DNA of 63,610 nt, filler included, from Perkinsus chesapeaki ATCC PRA-425 (GCA_013115145.1; 8 parts of 8 records of this genome joined end to end with filler, not necessarily neighbours in it); one strand, 5' to 3'. Shown: positions 1 to 7,954, counted from the whole stretch's first letter. Numbers and translations are program-made. Notes: generated by a model not told the origin, from the sequence alone.

Positions 1-492
1 TCTGTCTTTCTACCCTTGAGCAATGAGGACTTGAGTTATGTTACTACTATACTCTCAGCTGCTAATGAATAGTCACTGCAGTCTCCTGGGTTGCTCGTGG
101 ACATGCCTATTCCGGAGCGGATACGATCTATGGTACCACCGGCCTTTCTGTTGAGATGCCGCATGCAGGCGGGAGGCGGTGGATGGGTAGACTGCTCGGT
201 GCTATTGGGCACTGGGTCAGGCCTTGATTTCATTGTATTATATCATGGTTTTGCTCCCTTTATGCCGGGGAGGAGGCCTGTAATGTCAGGGTAAGGTTGG
301 CCGATGGTTCAGCGTGTGCGGTGACTCGCTGGGTCTCGTGCAATATGCAGATCGCTTAAGGCGAAGAATGGGGCTTTCGTACGGCGACTCCATGTTATTC
401 CGGCCTATCGAAAGGTTCCATCGTGCGCACATGCGGAGACCGTATTTTTGATTGCTGGCCGATCGTTCCTCCGTGATTTCCATGTAACAGTC
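1..492 (+). mobile_element. Left part of an interrupted, degenerate LTR retrotransposon pol (aspartic protease region); target of the nested insertion
   Basis: Frameshifted translation gives WVDCSVLLGTGSGLDFI (degenerate LLD[ST]G), VRLADGS and LIAGRSFLRDFHVTV. Removing 493-7090 joins this in frame to VGGEGKVLIHGPVPEP at 7091. Confidence 0.75.
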
Positions 493-897
493 TGATGAGA
501 CTGAGGATAGTCTCATAGATGAGCAGATGCCTTCCCGTGTAGGGATGCGCATCTCGGTCGCTACTACTCTATCTACTGGTACTAGACGACCCCGGAGAAA
601 ATGGTGTAGCGGTAAAGTCTGTGCAGTGCGCAAGTCCGGCGCGCTGGATATCCTCTGGGACGGTATTGGTGAAACGGCTAGATATGAAACCGTATGTATC
701 GACGACGCTGACTATCGAGTGCTTTGGTGATTATTGATGACTGATGCCTTAGTGTCACTGTATATGAATCTATATAGTTTGATAATTCGCTGCTCTCGTT
801 TGTTTCAGCTCGTTGCATGCACTATACTCCGTAGCCATCTTGGCTCAAGATCTTAGTTGCGGTTGCGTTTTTATAGTCCCCCGACTGGGATCAAACA
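493..897 (+). repeat. 5' LTR (405 bp, long form)
   Basis: TGATGAGACT...GGGATCAAACA. Matches 6818-7087 except 3 substitutions and 135 bp (132+3) absent from the 3' copy. Confidence 0.92.
828..849 (+). promoter_or_regulatory. Perkinsus-type spliced leader (SL) sequence embedded in the 5' LTR
   Basis: TCCGTAGCCATCTTGGCTCAAG matches the 22-nt perkinsid SL NCCGTAGCCATCTTGGCTCAAG. It is followed by ATC, not a GT donor. Confidence 0.9.
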
Positions 898-2355
898 TGG
901 CGACACCTTCCGACGAACTCCGAGCGGCTCGAAGTGAACTCCGACAATCGAAGCGCTCACTCCGAGATGTACGAGAAAAGCTCAACAACATCATTGATGA
1001 CGACACCGATGAGACCACGCCATTATAAAACACCTCGAGGACGAAGAGGCTAGTCTACAAGACCGCATTCGTGAGCTTGAAGCTCGCATAGCTGAGCTTG
1101 AGACGTCAATTGACTCTGAGAGATCCGAACTCGCACGACAAGAAGGACAATCCCGAGTTATTCTACCAGCCATCTCAAGCGAAGGCAAACAAGAAGATAA
1201 AGAGGCTTTGACCGGCGGCTTCATCTCCGCTGCTGCTGAAGAGGACGACGATGACAACAAGATCAAAAAGGTCAATGAGCACGAACATGAGAGTATTTCT
1301 GAGATACCATCGACGTCGACTACAACCAGAATTGGCCAACTGGCAGCCGCTGATCTGAGTGCCCTCTCAGTTCCCACTCTACAAAGCCCATCGTGTATTG
1401 GTGCTCATTTGTCTCTCTTGGAACAGTTATTCCACGAGGCTGGTGCTGGCGTATTTGCTGCTGACAATTCATTTTTACCTCACGGACATCTCCGTATCTC
1501 CGTCTACAACAAGTTACTTGAGAGCTTAAAGCCGTGCACTCAGGTTTCAGAGGTGGTAAATGCAATTGCCCAAAACGCCAACTACCAATGGTCTACAATC
1601 AAGTCAGAGCTACAACAGGAGTTTGCTCGCAGAGACATACTCAAAGCCGAATATAATACCGTTATTCGGTCGATTTGCTTCTCTGCTCTTGCTTCGGTAG
1701 AGACGTTTCTGCGCAAGGCCCTTGCCGCCTTTCGCATGTATCGCAGTGTTTATGGAAATGACCGTTCCGAACTGCGAACTATGGTAAGGTCCTTGTCATG
1801 AAACTCCCCGAGAAGCTCAGGGTTGATGTTGTTCGGAGCCTACAGAACCACAACACCGGTAACAAAGATTGGGAGCTAAGCGTTCCATTCGACGATGCCA
1901 ATAACCGTCTATCTGTCATCTCTGTCATAAGGGCAAACTGTCGTACCTTTAGAGATGCTGCCATCAGTCTTGACGCACCCCAAGGACAATCATCTACTAA
2001 CCGACACCAGAGTTACCCCAAAGAACGTCACTCTCAGAGTGACAGGATATCTCAAGTGTCGGACGGCAAAAGCACCAAAACCGAGTCCTTATCAAAGTGG
2101 GCCGGTCGCTTCGGCGCTGTCTTTGTGGTTACCGGTCCTGGTGTGGTTGGCTCTCCAGAGAATCACGTTCAATACGACGATGCACGTCACTACCCTCGTA
2201 GGGACGGTAATGGTGTCATCTGGTTTCTGGCTTACAAGGACGAGGCTAATGGTGCCCAAGTTGTCAACGATCTCTCCAGCGACCAGTTTGAGACCAGGAG
2301 GTTTGAATTTCGAACCCGACGCCAATCCTTTAAATCGACATCGTCAAAAAACTGA
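897..2355 (+). pseudogene. gag: gag-like ORF (N-terminal coiled coil), broken by frameshift and stop
   Basis: MATPSDELRAARSELRQ... at 897 shifts into IIKHLEDEEASLQDRIRELEARIAELE, then ORFs 1208-1801 and 1798-2355. Position between PBS and protease. No clear CCHC knuckle seen. Confidence 0.65.
898..915 (+). promoter_or_regulatory. Putative primer-binding site
   Basis: TGGCGACACC... immediately after the LTR-terminal CA; TGG is complementary to a tRNA CCA end. Primer tRNA not identified. Confidence 0.65.
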
Positions 2356-2544
2356 GCAGGTCTGATGCCGAGGCTCGCGAAACGCCTCCGCATCATCAAG
2401 GCCTATCTACCCAAGTTTCGCAATCCGTCAGTCCTCAACCTCGTGAGGACAGTGTTTTTGCTCTTTCTTCGTCTGCCATTCCCCCAGAGATCGTTCTAAG
2501 TGGTGCACTCCGTTCGTTAGCATCTTTTTCTTGGGACTCCCCGG

Positions 2545-4112
2545 TCAACGTTCCCATTCTTGTGGACTCTGGGGCAGGAGGCAATTATTTACTCGTTTGT
2601 AACACCGATACTGACTCTCTTCTCCGTGACTCAGGTGCTCTATTCACCCCGTCAAAGGGCATCTCTCCCGTTCAGTCAGTCTCGCTTGCAGATGGATCCC
2701 GTCGTACCATCTCCAAGTCCGTCGATGTCACCATCGGTGTCTACCCGGTCAGCTGCAATGATCCCGGTTCTATCGTCGGCCAACGTACGGTGACTCTCAG
2801 TGTACTCCCCGTTTCACCATGCCCTTTCATCCGTCCCAGCTCTTGGTGTGTACTCGCAGGTCGCTGCTTATTGGCTCTATGGGATCTTGCTACCAAAGGT
2901 TCTTCTATCGCCATCATCGATGGCACATGTGTCTTCCACTCCGATACCGACACAGAGGACACTGCTGCCATCTCTCACTGTGAATGCTTGGCGATTTGTC
3001 ATGATTATGACAGGCCAGATCTATCTTCCATTGGCGTTGAAGTTCAACCGACTTGTGACACAATATCCGGTCCTATTCAGGTCATTCCCCCCGACAATAT
3101 CGTCAACCGTGTCGAGGAACTACTGGATCGTTTCTGTGCTCAAGGCTGGCGTCCTCTGGTTCGATGTCCTAGCGAAGATCTCCGTGTTATGCTCCGCCGT
3201 CTGCTGCCAGATGAACTCCGTGACACCCCAAGCCAGAAGTACTGCTTCACTGTCGACTTGTCAGCCTTCGACAAGTCAAAGACGGACCGTTGTCGAAGCT
3301 ATGCTCGAGGGATGTACAACCGGCTACAAGCAGCAGACAAGGATGCATATACTGCCGACGACGCTCACCTAAAGGCCATTACTGATCTCTCGCCGCCTAT
3401 TCCCGTATTTATGATCGGCGGCTCGTCGAAGTCTTCATCAACCGTCAAGAAGCACCGTTTGGTTCTCGACTGTAGGTCCATTAACAAACGACTACCGTCG
3501 AGCAGTAGCGAGAACCCCAGCGGCCACCTCATCCTCAACTCTATCCGTTGGACATCTCCCGTAGCAGTGTCCAGTGTAGATGCGCAGCAGGCCTTTTATC
3601 GGCTCTGTGTCTGCGGTCTCACGCTGTTGCTGATGAGCGCGCTAGGCTCCTACATCAGTTGGCACATTTGCTTTTGTCTCTCCCCCGGTACTTCATCGCT
3701 CCAATCATCGTTGGGAGCTCTATTTTTTCTGGTGACTTGTCTTTATAGAGCCGGTTTCTGGAGCTTGTATGTCGATGATGGCATACTGGCTGGTGCCGTG
3801 CAGGCTCTTATATACAACTTGACGATCCTCATCTACTGTATGCTGCTATGTGGCTTCGCAGTACAGCCAACCAAGTTTGCATGCACCTGCGAACCATCAC
3901 GTACCGAGGAACTCCGTCAAGCTCTGGTTCCGTTTGGTGTCGAACCGTCTGACTCGCTCTCTCTTCTGCGCACAACTATCGGTTACACGCCTGGCACACT
4001 TGTACTCCGTTGTTGCAGAGAGAACCGTTTGGATCGAGTCTACAATTCGCCTGCTCCGACACCTCTCACGAGATTTCTAAAGCTTCAGCGTTTTCATACG
4101 CTGGCGCCTTAG
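2545..4112 (+). pseudogene. pol: pol: aspartic protease + reverse transcriptase
   Basis: VPILVDSGAGGN (PR active site), KKHRLVLDCRSIN, SVDAQQAFYRL, LYVDDGILAG. Confidence 0.88.
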
Positions 4113-5514
4113 CCTACGATGTTGCTCGTGTGCACCCTGAGTGCCGGTGCTGTTCTGATGGTTTCCGGTCACTCATCGGTCGCTGCCTAGCCCAACAAGG
4201 ATGGAATACTGTCGTTAACCTCTGTTCTTTTTTATCCCCTCTTCAGTTGGCAGCATATGATTTCTTCATCAAATGGATGCAGCAACTTTCTACCGCGTCC
4301 ATCGCTGACTGCTCCCATGCCACGGCGTGCGCTTCCGACGAGGCCTTGCCTAACCTCACGCTCGTTACCGATGCCTCTCGTTCTGGTGGCGGCTTCTTGG
4401 TGCTACGTGGCTCAGTGGAGGGCGGGAGCGAGAATGATCTCGCAGGACTACCGATGCTTTGCGGTGATGATTTCCGACGGAATAAAACCCAGAGGAACTA
4501 CCACTCCAATCGTCGGGAGTTACTTGCGCTAGTAGTCGGACTCCGCGCATGCGCAGATCTAGTCAACCACTACTTCGATAACTCCAAGGAATCTTCCGCT
4601 AATACCCCCCGCAGAAGACCCAAGGTTTGCGTGCTGTCCGATAATAAGGCTGTCATCCACTGGTCCCGAGAAGATGCCCCTGCCTTGTTTAACAGTGGTC
4701 AAGCTTTGGAAAAGAGAGCACTCACTCGTCTAGTCCTAGTGGCTATGGATGAGCTGAAGGCTCTGAAGCGTCACGCAGACGTCGAGGTGAGACACGTTAA
4801 GGGTTGTCGCAATGTCCGTGCTGATGAGCTCTCCAGATTATTCGATAATGTGATAGCTCCTGGGATCTCTTTAAGTGATATTTTATGTGATGACCTTCCA
4901 GATTCAAAACCCATTTGGCCTGAGGAATCTGATGACGATATCCGATTCCTGTTCACCGACGAGTCTGATGATGCGTCGGAGGCTGATTGCTATGAATCAT
5001 AGCCTATGATCCTTACGCCAGAGATCGCCTTCTCCTGTTCCGACATTGCGAGCCCGACTCTGGTGACGTCTCACTCGATCTGCGTACTGATTATGTCCGT
5101 GTGCTGGCTACCGACCCTCCCCAGACTTCTCCGTGCTTGGTGGAACGCATTGCTCGTGGTTGTTATGACTATTCGACTGTTTTGGACCGTATCCGTGGTA
5201 TGCGGTTCGTTATTCGTCTACTACGTAACAATGCGTCTGGGGCGGATTTACGAAATGTGGAGTATGCAGCCATCAACGGTGACGCTGACAAGAAGGCCTT
5301 GGTATACTCTGCTCAGCTACATGACGACTTTTGCACTACTACCCGATCGGCGCCGCAGTCCTGTGGTCCATATGTACTTTCTCGTGATGATAGTTCAGAT
5401 ATGCCCTTGGTGTTGTTCCGGTCTGGTAGCCCGTTTGGTACCGAAGTCTTTCAGTATGTTTTGCCTAAGACTGTGGCCAGGCTGAGCCTGGCAGGCTCCG
5501 TGAGAAGGTTCTGA
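4010..5514 (+). pseudogene. pol: pol: RNase H and RH-IN linker (frameshifted pieces)
   Basis: LVTDASRSGGG, NYHSNRRELLALVVGL, VLSDNKAV, HVKGCRNVRADELSR; linker YDYSTVLDRIRGMRFVIRLL. Confidence 0.85.
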
Positions 5515-5546
5515 AAGATGCCCATTCGCGAACGGAACACCAAACG

Positions 5547-6920
5547 GTGAGGCCGACATTAGCAGCTGTGGTAGACTACCATCTGCCTGGAGGCACACGT
5601 CAATGCCGCGATCTGCTGAGTACATGTATTATCTTTGCCGAAGGCAAAGAGGACCACTGGTCCTCTTTGCCTTCGGTGCGTAGCGATGCTGCGGCTCTTG
5701 CCCATTTGCCACCTTATTGGCATGTGGCCGTAGACTTTCTTGCTGTCGGCGACCACGTTAAGCTGTTCAGTGCCGTTTGCATGTTCACTCGTCATATTAC
5801 TTTGTTTAGGGCCAGATCCGAAACTAGTGCCGAAGCAGTCCGTTTGCTCAGGCTGTTGAAGGTTAAGACTGGCGCCGTCCGAATTGTGACTTGTGATCGT
5901 GCAGCCTACTTCAGGTCGTCTGAAGGCTTTCTGCGTCGAGTCGAGACCGAGATTGGTGCGGAAGTTCGGTTGGCTTCTAGCAGAGCTCCTTGGGGGATCT
6001 GTTCTGAGTCGCACCATGCTATTATTCTCGACCGGCTCCGTTGTATGCTTCGTCATTCTTCTGGGAAGTGGCCCTCTGACCGTGATGAGGAAGACTTCCT
6101 ATTAGAGCGTTTGATGTCAATCGTCATTGCTCGCCCGTTGGGTAACTTTCTGATAAGCCAAGGTTCCGCTGAGATTGTTACCCCTGATAGTCTCTATTTC
6201 GGTAGGACTAGGGATGCTGGCAGCTGCCTCATAGGTACACAGCCTACCTCCACTAGTCACCAGCACTTGATGCCCAATAGACTGAAGGTCTTCCGTAACG
6301 TATTCCTTGACTTCGTTTGGTCCGAGCTCAAAAAGCAGTCTCTCAGTGCTATTGCATCTAAGTGCAGAGGGAAGCAAACTACTGTGGTTGGTTTCTATCC
6401 TGGTGATGCAGTACTTGTATCGATGAGTGGTCGCAAATGTGGTATGTCATTCCGCATGGGACATGTGGTGAAGGTGCTGTCTCCTCGTCGAGTCCAAGTG
6501 AGATTTCCCGGCGGGCTCCTAACCCATGAGAATGCCTACAATTTGGTTGTACTTCGTCCCTTTCCGCGGCTTGATCCTGACATTCCTACAGTATCTCGTG
6601 AAGGTCAGCGTCTGCGCATATCGGGTGCTGACGGTCGGTGGGGTGAAGGGCTTGTTACCTTTGATCCCTGCGATCCAACTAACGATAAATTGTGGATCCA
6701 GTTTGATAACGGCGATGCTCCCGAGTTCCTGTCTCTCTCTATGCAACAGTGGGATTCTGTTGAGAAGGGTAACTACGAGGCCAAAGATTGTGCTCGTGAG
6801 TCCTCGCATGGGGGGCGTGATGAGACTGAGGATAGTCTCATAGATGAGCAGATGCCTTCCCGTGTAAGGATGCGCATCTCGGTCGCTACTATCGACGCTG
6901 ACTATCGAGTGCTTTGGTGA
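5547..6920 (+). CDS. pol: pol: DDE integrase with BEL/Pao-type C-terminal region and Tudor-like tail; ORF runs into the 3' LTR
   Basis: HVAVDFLAV, IVTCDRAAYF, RAPWGICSE, IVIARPLG, IVTPDSLYFGR, FYPGDAVLV...GHVVKVL; tail GQRLRI...WGEGLVT...IQFDNGD..E.LSL. Stop TGA at 6918-6920 is inside the LTR. Confidence 0.88.
   Translation: MRPTLAAVVDYHLPGGTRQCRDLLSTCIIFAEGKEDHWSSLPSVRSDAAALAHLPPYWHVAVDFLAVGDHVKLFSAVCMFTRHITLFRARSETSAEAVRLLRLLKVKTGAVRIVTCDRAAYFRSSEGFLRRVETEIGAEVRLASSRAPWGICSESHHAIILDRLRCMLRHSSGKWPSDRDEEDFLLERLMSIVIARPLGNFLISQGSAEIVTPDSLYFGRTRDAGSCLIGTQPTSTSHQHLMPNRLKVFRNVFLDFVWSELKKQSLSAIASKCRGKQTTVVGFYPGDAVLVSMSGRKCGMSFRMGHVVKVLSPRRVQVRFPGGLLTHENAYNLVVLRPFPRLDPDIPTVSREGQRLRISGADGRWGEGLVTFDPCDPTNDKLWIQFDNGDAPEFLSLSMQQWDSVEKGNYEAKDCARESSHGGRDETEDSLIDEQMPSRVRMRISVATIDADYRVLW
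6808..6817 (+). promoter_or_regulatory. Short polypurine tract
   Basis: ATGGGGGGCG directly 5' of the 3' LTR TG. Confidence 0.6.
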
Positions 6921-7087
6921 TTATTAATGACTGATGCCTTAGTGTCACTGTATATGAATCTATATAGTTTGATAATTCGCTGCTCTCGTTTGTTTCAGCT
7001 CGTTGTATGCACTATACTCCGTAGCCATCTTGGCTCAAGATCTTAGTTGCGGTTGCGTTTTTATAGTCCCCCGACTGGGATCAAACA
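6818..7087 (+). repeat. 3' LTR (270 bp, internally deleted form)
   Basis: Direct repeat of 493-897 lacking the equivalents of 566-697 and one GAC. Confidence 0.92.
7018..7039 (+). promoter_or_regulatory. Perkinsus-type spliced leader sequence embedded in the 3' LTR
   Basis: Identical 22-mer TCCGTAGCCATCTTGGCTCAAG. Confidence 0.9.
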
Positions 7088-7090
7088 GTC

Positions 7091-7672
7091 GTTGGAGGAG
7101 AAGGCAAGGTCCTTATTCATGGCCCTGTGCCTGAACCGCCTGACGGACACTCTTTGTGCCTGATATCTGCGGTAGGCTCTGGCGGTAAAGCCTCTGAGAC
7201 GAGTCTCTTCGCTTTGGAAGATGCTGATGATCTCTCCCCAACCGGCAATGACAAGTTGCTCCTGGACGCAGTTCCTAGCGACCAGGAGGTTATCTATATT
7301 CAGTTTTCTTCACCTCCTGCATTGTGCGACGACTTGCTTCGCACCTTAACCGGAAGGTCGTGGGTTCCGATGAGATATTGCCCGCATTGGTTGGCTCGCT
7401 TGAGGGCATTGGAGCGGGATGAGCCGCGAGATGACCCGGAGCAGAGATATGTCTTCGAGCTCACGTCCGATAACCTTGCCGAGAAGCGCCCCCTGTCACT
7501 CCCAGACTCAGCGATCCGGTTCTCAAAGACGGCTTATGAGCGGCTCGACGCTACTCAGCAGAAAGCATTTGATGACATCGTCAAAGACTACGAGGATCGC
7601 GGGTGGTGGGTACCGACGGATGAGGGAAGGCTCCGAGCTACCGCTGAGCGCGTGCTCGATCCAGCTGTTGAT
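7091..7672 (+). mobile_element. Right part of the host LTR element pol (PR-RT linker to RT N-terminus), truncated by the GTACAC element
   Basis: RFSKTAYERLDATQQKAFDDIVKDYEDRGWWVP resembles the pre-RT segment of the other two elements (e.g. RLRKQGLYEVYDNEIQNFLRSGYI). Confidence 0.7.
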
Positions 7673-7954
7673 GATTGGTACACATAAACTACGTACACAT
7701 GAAACTCGTACACGGAATTTTTGACTTTTAGCTGGTACACCAAATTCCCGTACACTCAAATCTCTGTCGACAAAATGTGATACACCTAAAATAGGTTCAG
7801 GGCCAAGTAGTACACAAAAACTCCGTTCATATCAGTGTCGTACACTAAGATTTGGTTCAGTGTGATTTCGTACTCCTCGAACTCGTACACCCGAATCGGG
7901 TGTACGAGTTCGAGGAGTACGAAATCACATCGGGTGACCCGATGGCTCGTACAC
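7673..7954 (-). mobile_element. One arm of a GTACAC-repeat foldback/MITE-like element, cut by the contig end
   Basis: Begins GATTGGTACACATAAA; near-identical reverse complement of 13781-14014; at least 8 GTACAC motifs. Confidence 0.8.

Follow-up and report, generated by a model that had tools for sequence, protein, structure and literature searches.

The window analyzed here is a stretch of 63,610 nt (filler included) from the shellfish parasite Perkinsus chesapeaki ATCC PRA-425 (GCA_013115145.1), in which parts of eight records were joined end to end. Near its beginning lies a dead, degenerate long terminal repeat (LTR) retrotransposon with gag, reverse transcriptase (RT), RNase H, integrase and 3-bp target-site duplications, which we denote as C8; all its features described below are located on the plus strand. 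Its direct repeat pairs 493–566 and 703–897 with 6818–6891 and 6893–7087, with only 3 substitutions in 270 aligned nt (~99% identity). The 5′ LTR (493–897) is 405 nt long, has TG...CA ends and aligns with the LTR of an orthologous element in Perkinsus olseni; the 3′ LTR (6818–7087) is 270 nt long and misses 135 nt (567–701) of the 5′ copy. The trinucleotide GTC directly flanks both element ends (490–492 and 7088–7090). Thus, the terminal repeats with TG...CA, the target duplication and the order gag-RT-RNase H-integrase all identify the element as an LTR retrotransposon.

Both LTRs encode the spliced leader (SL) of the host. The 21-mer CCGTAGCCATCTTGGCTCAAG occurs as an exact match in the window only at 829–849 and 7019–7039, with 0 occurrences expected (200 shuffles), and together with the preceding T it forms a 22-nt SL at 828–849 and 7018–7039. 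The first of these copies is the proposed start of R, the sequence present at both ends of the element RNA, and the second its proposed 3′ counterpart. The SL is positioned 48 nt upstream of the LTR end, at which a putative primer-binding site (PBS) overlaps the gag start codon; 47 nt (850–896) separate it from the gag ATG (897–899), and the bases following it are AT (ATCTTAG), not GT. The original prediction, made from the sequence alone, had described an LTR retrotransposon with an SL in both LTRs, 47 nt ahead of the gag ATG and not followed by a GT donor. The repeats and the gag-pol remnants bear out this architecture, with the SL located just 5′ of the putative PBS and of gag, and the distance and the missing donor were found as described. 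The prediction had also called the SL perfect, which is correct for both sites only if the first position is taken as degenerate: compared with the PmaSL1 of Perkinsus (ACCGTAGCCATCTTGGCTCAAG; Zhang et al. 2011, PMC3101222), the window SL differs at nucleotide 1 only, and the true SL RNA genes of P. chesapeaki (G000:C411:601 and C2742:298) have an A there, followed after the SL by a GTAAAT donor and the intron. The match between the LTR copies and the genomic SL RNA gene is therefore 21/22. The GT donor and the conserved intron of such genes (GTAAATATCC...) were absent from the window SL, and the combination of a GT donor with the SL intron was present in none of the LTR-type SL copies. The S-type 21-nt SL of Perkinsus marinus was absent from the P. 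chesapeaki assembly. An ORF on another contig of that assembly is 100% identical to FOL47_005154, a hypothetical protein of P. chesapeaki.

Scanning the P. chesapeaki genome for the SL, we found 30 sites with at most one mismatch and 51 with at most three, compared with 0 for the reversed pattern that served as control. Three further pairs of SLs, about 6 kb apart and on the same strand, belong to full elements (C61, C919, and C2061). C61 is a relative of the window family with the same PBS and a 3-bp duplication (CTG). C919 is Bel/Pao-like, with 396-nt LTRs that are 100% identical, a CACC duplication and a single intact 2027-aa open reading frame (ORF) containing Pao-peptidase and integrase domains. 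C2061 is Ty3/gypsy-like, with 100% identical LTRs of 211 nt, a CTATT duplication and a single intact 1857-aa ORF encoding zf-CCHC, protease, RT and integrase. The four full elements have unrelated LTR sequences, those of C61, C919 and C2061 being unalignable with one another, and each element contains an SL in its 5′ and its 3′ LTR. Between this SL and the LTR end there are 48 nt in C8, 30 nt in C61, 206 nt in C919 and 52 nt in C2061. Beyond these, an SL lies just 3′ of a gypsy-like pol in C3246, and two further families (C476/C553/C217 and C3349/C72) consist of SL-bearing units of ~180–300 bp with AACA at the end and differing flanks, which look like solo LTRs. A chance or assembly artefact was ruled out by the empty reversed-pattern control and by the SL pairs residing in 100% identical LTRs between target duplications.

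Counterparts were also present in P. olseni, whose contigs we obtained through protein relatives. The contig L066 contains the orthologue of the window family, with 329-nt LTRs (98.8% identical), a CTT duplication, an identical PBS and gag start, intact ORFs and a perfect SL in both LTRs. A second copy of the same family (L067) has a perfect SL in its 5′ LTR, and the contig ends within the 3′ LTR before the SL is reached. A gypsy-like element with a 1952-aa ORF carries the SL in both LTRs as well (L061, JABANP010000359.1), and a C61-like element was found in L068 (JABANP010000640.1). Between the LTRs of P. chesapeaki and P. olseni the SL is identical at 22/22 positions, compared with ~56–65% identity in the flanks (P about 8e-5). 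Hence, the question of whether the SL is confined to a single copy, which would have spoken against the original prediction, was answered in its favor: the SL is family-wide, occurs in multiple families and is shared between P. chesapeaki and P. olseni. Several unrelated lineages in two Perkinsus species carry the host leader in the LTR where R should begin.

The SL behaves differently in replicating and in dead copies. Old copies of the C8 family have their SL hit by five substitutions, by deletions or by an insertion, and the C1068 lineage, which is only 72% identical in the flanks, retains a perfect SL. The SL is therefore maintained in replicating lineages and decays neutrally in dead DNA; neutral decay throughout the window family, which would have spoken against the original prediction, was confined to dead copies. 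The mismatches themselves are unevenly distributed. Among 48 SL-like sites, 32 of the 57 mismatches fall on SL nucleotides 2–3 (P = 2e-18), and at the single CpG of the SL, C-to-T changes outnumber G-to-A changes by 15:1. A bias this strand-specific points to an RNA or cDNA step rather than to decay of DNA, and would fit copying of a genuine, modified SL. Likewise, the concentration of mismatches near the 5′ end fits copying of an RNA whose cap-proximal nucleotides hinder RT; cap-proximal modifications have been invoked to explain why the SL is often incomplete in cDNAs of Perkinsus (Joseph et al. 2010, PMC2868825), where this problem is known.

The distribution of start codons sets the two sides of the SL apart. 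In the window element, the inferred U3 region (493–827, including 567–701) contains 11 ATGs and the segment from the SL to the gag ATG none. Reading on from the SL, the first ATG is the start of gag or of the polyprotein in 4 out of 4 full elements of P. chesapeaki; in C919 this leaves 234 ATG-free nt behind the SL (P about 0.03), and the U3 sides of the full elements contain 3–11 ATGs. The SL-PBS distance, 30–52 nt in four of the five full-length families and 206 nt in C919, is as expected of a short R-U5. Finally, the 5′ repeat of L068 starts at SL nucleotide 2, shares only the SL and 33 nt with the complete 3′ LTR (L068:1029–1082 vs 7304–7357) and is preceded by 1028 nt of unique, ORF-free sequence. 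Such a repeat could stem from a copy that starts where the RNA starts, from rearrangement at the SL, or from an error in the assembly. A probable tyrosine-recombinase retroelement in L061 likewise begins with a perfect SL.

Because of the ATG pattern, the SL-PBS distance, the mismatch bias and the copies beginning at the SL, we place the SL at the start of the transcribed part of the element. We consider it rather probable that the SL marks the U3/R boundary, i.e., the 5′ end of the replicative RNA, and forms the first 22 nt of R. The best reading of the LTR would then be a U3 (493–827), the host SL (828–849) and a short U5 (850–897). In retroviruses and LTR retrotransposons, minus-strand transfer can work with an R of about 15–25 nt at the two ends of the RNA, and the 22-nt SL with a U5 of 30–52 nt is on this scale. 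The usual R is specific to its element; that of the Perkinsus elements would be a host sequence common to the SL-bearing families and to host mRNAs.

Such an arrangement might have arisen when the RNA of an ancestral element was trans-spliced like a host mRNA and minus-strand strong-stop DNA copied the leader, by which the SL would have been acquired for the first time. Once the SL was also present in the 3′ LTR, the leader itself would supply the terminal redundancy needed for the first strand transfer, and each later cycle would rewrite the SL into both LTRs. According to this proposal, the SL would stay exact while the rest of the LTR diverges, and decay would be restricted to dead copies, because every cycle rewrites it. 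Like a mature host mRNA after trans-splicing, the element RNA would begin with the SL, which a short leader devoid of ATGs would separate from the start of gag. The 5′ SL of this RNA could today be added anew by trans-splicing at the terminal AG of the encoded SL, so that the sequence would be restored, or transcription could start at the encoded SL.

In its most far-reaching form, which we put forward only tentatively, the proposal would mean that R is outsourced to the host: the 5′ SL would be trans-spliced onto the AG of the encoded SL, so that any upstream transcription including read-through would suffice, the SL in the 3′ LTR would be the landing site for strand transfer, and both SLs would be rewritten from host SL RNA in each cycle. 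If true, such an LTR retrotransposon would be promoter-independent and have its R templated by the host, and its strong-stop DNA could jump between any SL-bearing RNAs.

Several points weigh against placing the 5′ end of the replicative RNA at the SL. The positions of R, of the transcription start and of the poly(A) site are inferred from sequence, and the two very small sequencing runs listed for P. chesapeaki gave zero coverage over window positions 1–6000. In the C8 family the conserved block reaches beyond the SL, from −26 to +18, so part of this conservation may reflect other cis functions. Three of the four full elements (C61, C919, and C2061) carry a variant at SL nucleotide 2 or 3 that is identical in both LTRs, which a faithful reset from the host SL in every cycle does not predict, unless RT misreads there; at nucleotides 2–4, where the canonical SL reads CCG, C919 and C2061 have CTG and C61 has ACG. 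Furthermore, if trans-splicing used the AG at the end of the encoded SL, the genomic RNA could also be cleaved at the corresponding AG of the 3′ LTR. Prevalence is a further concern, which we addressed by comparing the contigs with integrase matches to those with SL matches in the P. chesapeaki genome. There were at least 150 integrase matches, and among 35 contigs with integrase-containing open frames of at least 1300 aa only two (C919 and C2061) had an SL-like sequence; the other 33 were negative even with the 15-nt 3′ part of the SL and one mismatch allowed, and in 17 of these 33 the element lies far from the ends of a large contig. Evidently, most LTR elements of P. chesapeaki replicate without an encoded SL, which makes the SL a minority strategy of several lineages. 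The original suggestion that the encoded SL solves a general conflict between trans-splicing and LTR replication was thus too broad, as most intact integrase-bearing elements do without it.

A variant of our reading, differing only in how the 5′ end arises, is that the U3 promoter starts transcription at the encoded SL or a few bases into it, so that the element itself makes an SL-headed RNA without trans-splicing. Selection for translation, export or stability, rather than renewal from a template, would then keep nucleotides 4–22. This is a possibility that we judge doubtful. It would account for the free variation of SL nucleotides 1–3 next to the conservation of nucleotides 4–22, which is expected if the first bases are just outside the transcript, and for the variants shared by both LTRs of the young elements C61, C919 and C2061, as expected of inherited and not renewed sequence; the latter fit either such mimicry or misreading by RT. 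The SL is also never tandem-duplicated. However, the families have no promoter or initiator motif in common ahead of the SL, and the 15:1 strand bias at the CpG is indicative of a step involving RNA or cDNA. The U3-less copy in L068 fits mimicry and trans-splicing alike.

Less probable still, and in our view unlikely, is that the SL is a passive internal relic, captured once or a few times inside R or U5 without any role and without marking the 5′ end, with young copies merely looking conserved. Dead copies do lose the SL at about the neutral rate, and most LTR elements manage without it. On the other hand, the SL is exact in at least seven LTR families with unalignable flanks and likewise in orthologous families of the two species despite 56–65% identity in the LTR flanks, the ATG-free stretch starts at the SL and the mismatches are unevenly spread. 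That the SL copies of the LTRs represent SL RNA genes or pseudogenes, which might still serve as SL donors, or that the element targets SL RNA genes like SLACS and CZAR, is very improbable and already largely refuted: GT directly follows the SL in C919, in P. olseni L068 and in the short "L2-like" repeats, but the window SL is followed by AT and by nothing like the intron of true genes, it lies inside both LTRs with 335 nt of shared sequence upstream, the insertion site, bounded by the element's own target duplications, is not an SL locus, and no small RNAs were detected from "L1-like" or "L2-like" loci (Zhang et al. 2011, PMC3101222). We also rejected capture of an SL RNA gene or of its promoter, since neither the upstream sequence nor the intron is similar.

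The original prediction had also drawn attention to an acceptor-like site upstream of the SL. The pyrimidine-rich stretch TTTGTTTCAG with the AG at 807–808 is indeed present (799–808), but it is absent from the orthologous P. olseni LTR and has no counterpart in the other SL-bearing LTRs; it is probably non-functional or irrelevant. Splicing at this AG was rejected, because the site is not conserved and its use would yield SL-19 nt-SL duplications, of which none were seen.

The remaining parts of the window element follow the expected order. In the 3′ copy, the first ~100 nt of U3 encode the C terminus of pol, and residues 1524–1599 of the P. olseni L066 pol match window positions 494–724. Behind the SL, the remainder of R/U5 (850–897, 48 nt to the LTR end) contains no ATG, and its first 18 nt are conserved among family members. 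The putative PBS TGGCGACACC (898–907) overlaps the gag start codon, with the ATG made up of the last LTR base and the first two PBS bases. The same decamer directly follows the 5′ LTR in C61, L066 and L067, and 9 of its 10 nt do so in L068. For the longer PBS of C61, the 16 nt that were searched are complementary, with one mismatch, to a tRNA-like 3′ end at two genomic sites, which would be a candidate primer. A polypurine-tract-like sequence, ATGGGGGGCG (6808–6817), directly precedes the 3′ LTR, and its G6 motif is also found ahead of the 3′ LTR in C61, L066 and L068.

The gag remnant (897–2286) is broken by two frame changes (near 1022–1052 and at 1792) and a stop at 1027; in tblastn it matches the intact 499-aa gag ORF of L066 with 61–69% identity in three different frames. 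The pol remnant (2283–6890) includes RT (YVDD at 3768–3779), an RNase H region and integrase (5547–6920), has at least three frame changes and matches the 1600-aa pol ORF of L066 with 66–77% identity in frames 3, 2, 1 and 3 (tblastn). We regard the window copy as dead because it has at least five frame changes overall and early stops in comparison with the collinear intact gag and pol of L066. Searching Pfam with the window pol, we obtained a weak rve match and no score for RVT_1; the RT region is 25–30% identical to that of C2061. Since RVT_1 does not score and rve is weak, we left the superfamily of the window element open. The C8/C61 lineage (the window, L038, and L066) has 3-bp target duplications (GTC, CTG, and CTT), which are unusually short for LTR retrotransposons, and with an RT that Pfam RVT_1 does not recognize it may be a divergent lineage.

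Additional repeats were observed next to the element. An ORF in its 3′ flank (7127–7687) is a remnant of another retroelement, 28% identical to residues 215–381 of the L066 pol; therefore, the window element lies beside or inside older retroelement debris. A GTACAC-rich repeat of ~222 bp at 7673–7894 has at least 40 genomic copies with 84–97% identity. Its last 34 nt are followed by an inverted copy, forming a perfect palindrome (7861–7894/7896–7929), and many other copies are built alike. Some of them share contigs with SL-bearing LTRs (C1631, C72, C1446, and C3238). This repeat may be a miniature inverted-repeat transposable element or a transposon end.

Other SL-containing sequences were noted as well. 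In an "L2-like" family the SL is followed by GTCTCAGTGTAC (C1631:1302, L056; C211:70609, L055; C2932:25007, L054; C3189:6106, L053). Homology among these copies is limited to ~130–170 bp around the SL, no ORF follows, and the GT after the SL is not accompanied by the SL intron; we could not show that these repeats are LTRs. Three identical SL variants, CCGTAGCCTATTTGGCTCAAG, at G000:C796:355, C3300:1609 and C3352:18 may represent either another type of SL or a further family of repeats. In several unrelated SL repeats a motif [AG]T[CT]T[CT]AGT comes right after the SL (ATCTTAGT, ATCTCAGT, GTCTCAGT, and ATTTTAGT; window 850–856), which may reflect common ancestry or a functional leader extension. 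In P. olseni, a perfect SL located 15 nt after a gypsy-like 3′ LTR heads ORFs with RT and phage-integrase matches below the Pfam cut-off (L061:12074–15762); this is probably a DIRS/Ngaro-like (tyrosine-recombinase) retroelement that also starts with an SL. No SL was found in metagenomic relatives of the C2061 polyprotein (L058–L060) or in one P. marinus contig (L062), all of which have partial or no LTRs and are uninformative in this respect. Scanning metagenomes with the SL 21-mer yielded 57 contigs, and those long ORFs behind the SL that were tested are not retroelements. In five of the contigs (L097, L108, L116, L079, and L082) the exact Perkinsus-type SL is directly followed by a degenerate, truncated SL-like sequence; these are dinoflagellate-style tandem relicts from perkinsid or dinozoan genomes or transcripts.

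Retroelements tied to SL sequences are known from trypanosomatids, where the non-LTR, site-specific retrotransposons SLACS, CZAR and CRE are inserted in SL RNA genes. In Perkinsus, by contrast, the SL belongs to the element itself and moves along with it. A second comparison concerns the relict SLs of dinoflagellate retrogenes, which were attributed to reverse-transcribed trans-spliced RNA (Slamovits and Keeling 2008, as related in PMC3229502, PMC7245778 and PMC6050394). As far as these accounts describe them, the dinoflagellate relicts are likewise DNA-encoded SLs without donor or intron, but they head retrocopies of cellular genes, are truncated at an internal AG and stand in tandem behind a new SL. 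Unlike those relicts, the SL of the Perkinsus LTRs is full length and single, lies within an LTR with hundreds of shared bases upstream, is found at either end of an autonomous element and has been conserved between species. Consistent with this distinction, neither a tandem relict SL nor poly(A) followed the SL at any of ~30 distinct sites, and the window element lacks the signature of a dinoflagellate-type retrogene: the LTRs share 335 nt on the 5′ side of the SL, and the ORF that follows it is gag-pol.

Closer in kind is Cer1, a Ty3/gypsy element of Caenorhabditis elegans and thus also an LTR retrotransposon in a trans-splicing host. Cer1 has an SL1 acceptor in its leader, but only a 2.4-kb spliced RNA carries SL1, whereas the full-length 8-kb RNA for gag-pol escapes trans-splicing (Dennis et al. 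2012, PMC3315495). Different from the Perkinsus elements, Cer1 skips its SL1 site and has no SL in the LTR. The comparison touches on a basic conflict: trans-splicing removes the 5′ end of a transcript, and LTR replication needs identical sequence at both RNA ends. Cer1, the one well-studied case, avoids this conflict in that its genomic RNA is not trans-spliced.

Intron-less SL copies as such are no novelty in Perkinsus. More than 100 genomic PmaSL copies without intron were reported for P. marinus; they mostly start with T, are repeated and yield no SL RNA (Zhang et al. 2011, PMC3101222). Numerous genome-encoded SLs were also mentioned in an earlier study (Joseph et al. 2010, PMC2868825). 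Both studies left these copies unexplained and made no link to LTR retrotransposons, PBS, gag or R. The novelty suspected in the original prediction is thus partial. Searching the literature that joins the spliced leader or DinoSL with LTRs or retrotransposons, we found no description of SL-bearing LTRs. The first eight post-SL bases of the "L1-like" primer used for P. marinus (SL + ATCTTAGTG) are those of the window family (SL + ATCTTAGT), and the "L2-like" primer (SL + GTCTCAGTGTAC) matches the short repeats in P. chesapeaki.

The results suggest that the host leader is used as the start of the element's own RNA, and the most fitting description is that of a new kind of LTR architecture, in which the host leader would stand at the U3/R boundary. 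This has a practical side, as SL-primed cDNA libraries and SL-based counts of retrogenes in perkinsids, and possibly in dinoflagellates, will catch SL-bearing elements. If the reading holds true on RNA, the variants at nucleotides 2–3 would be a natural marker distinguishing encoded from trans-spliced leaders, and the long-unexplained intron-less SL copies of Perkinsus genomes would find an explanation. It would then also constitute a novel mode of retroelement adaptation to hosts that trans-splice, with the element RNA disguised as a mature host mRNA.

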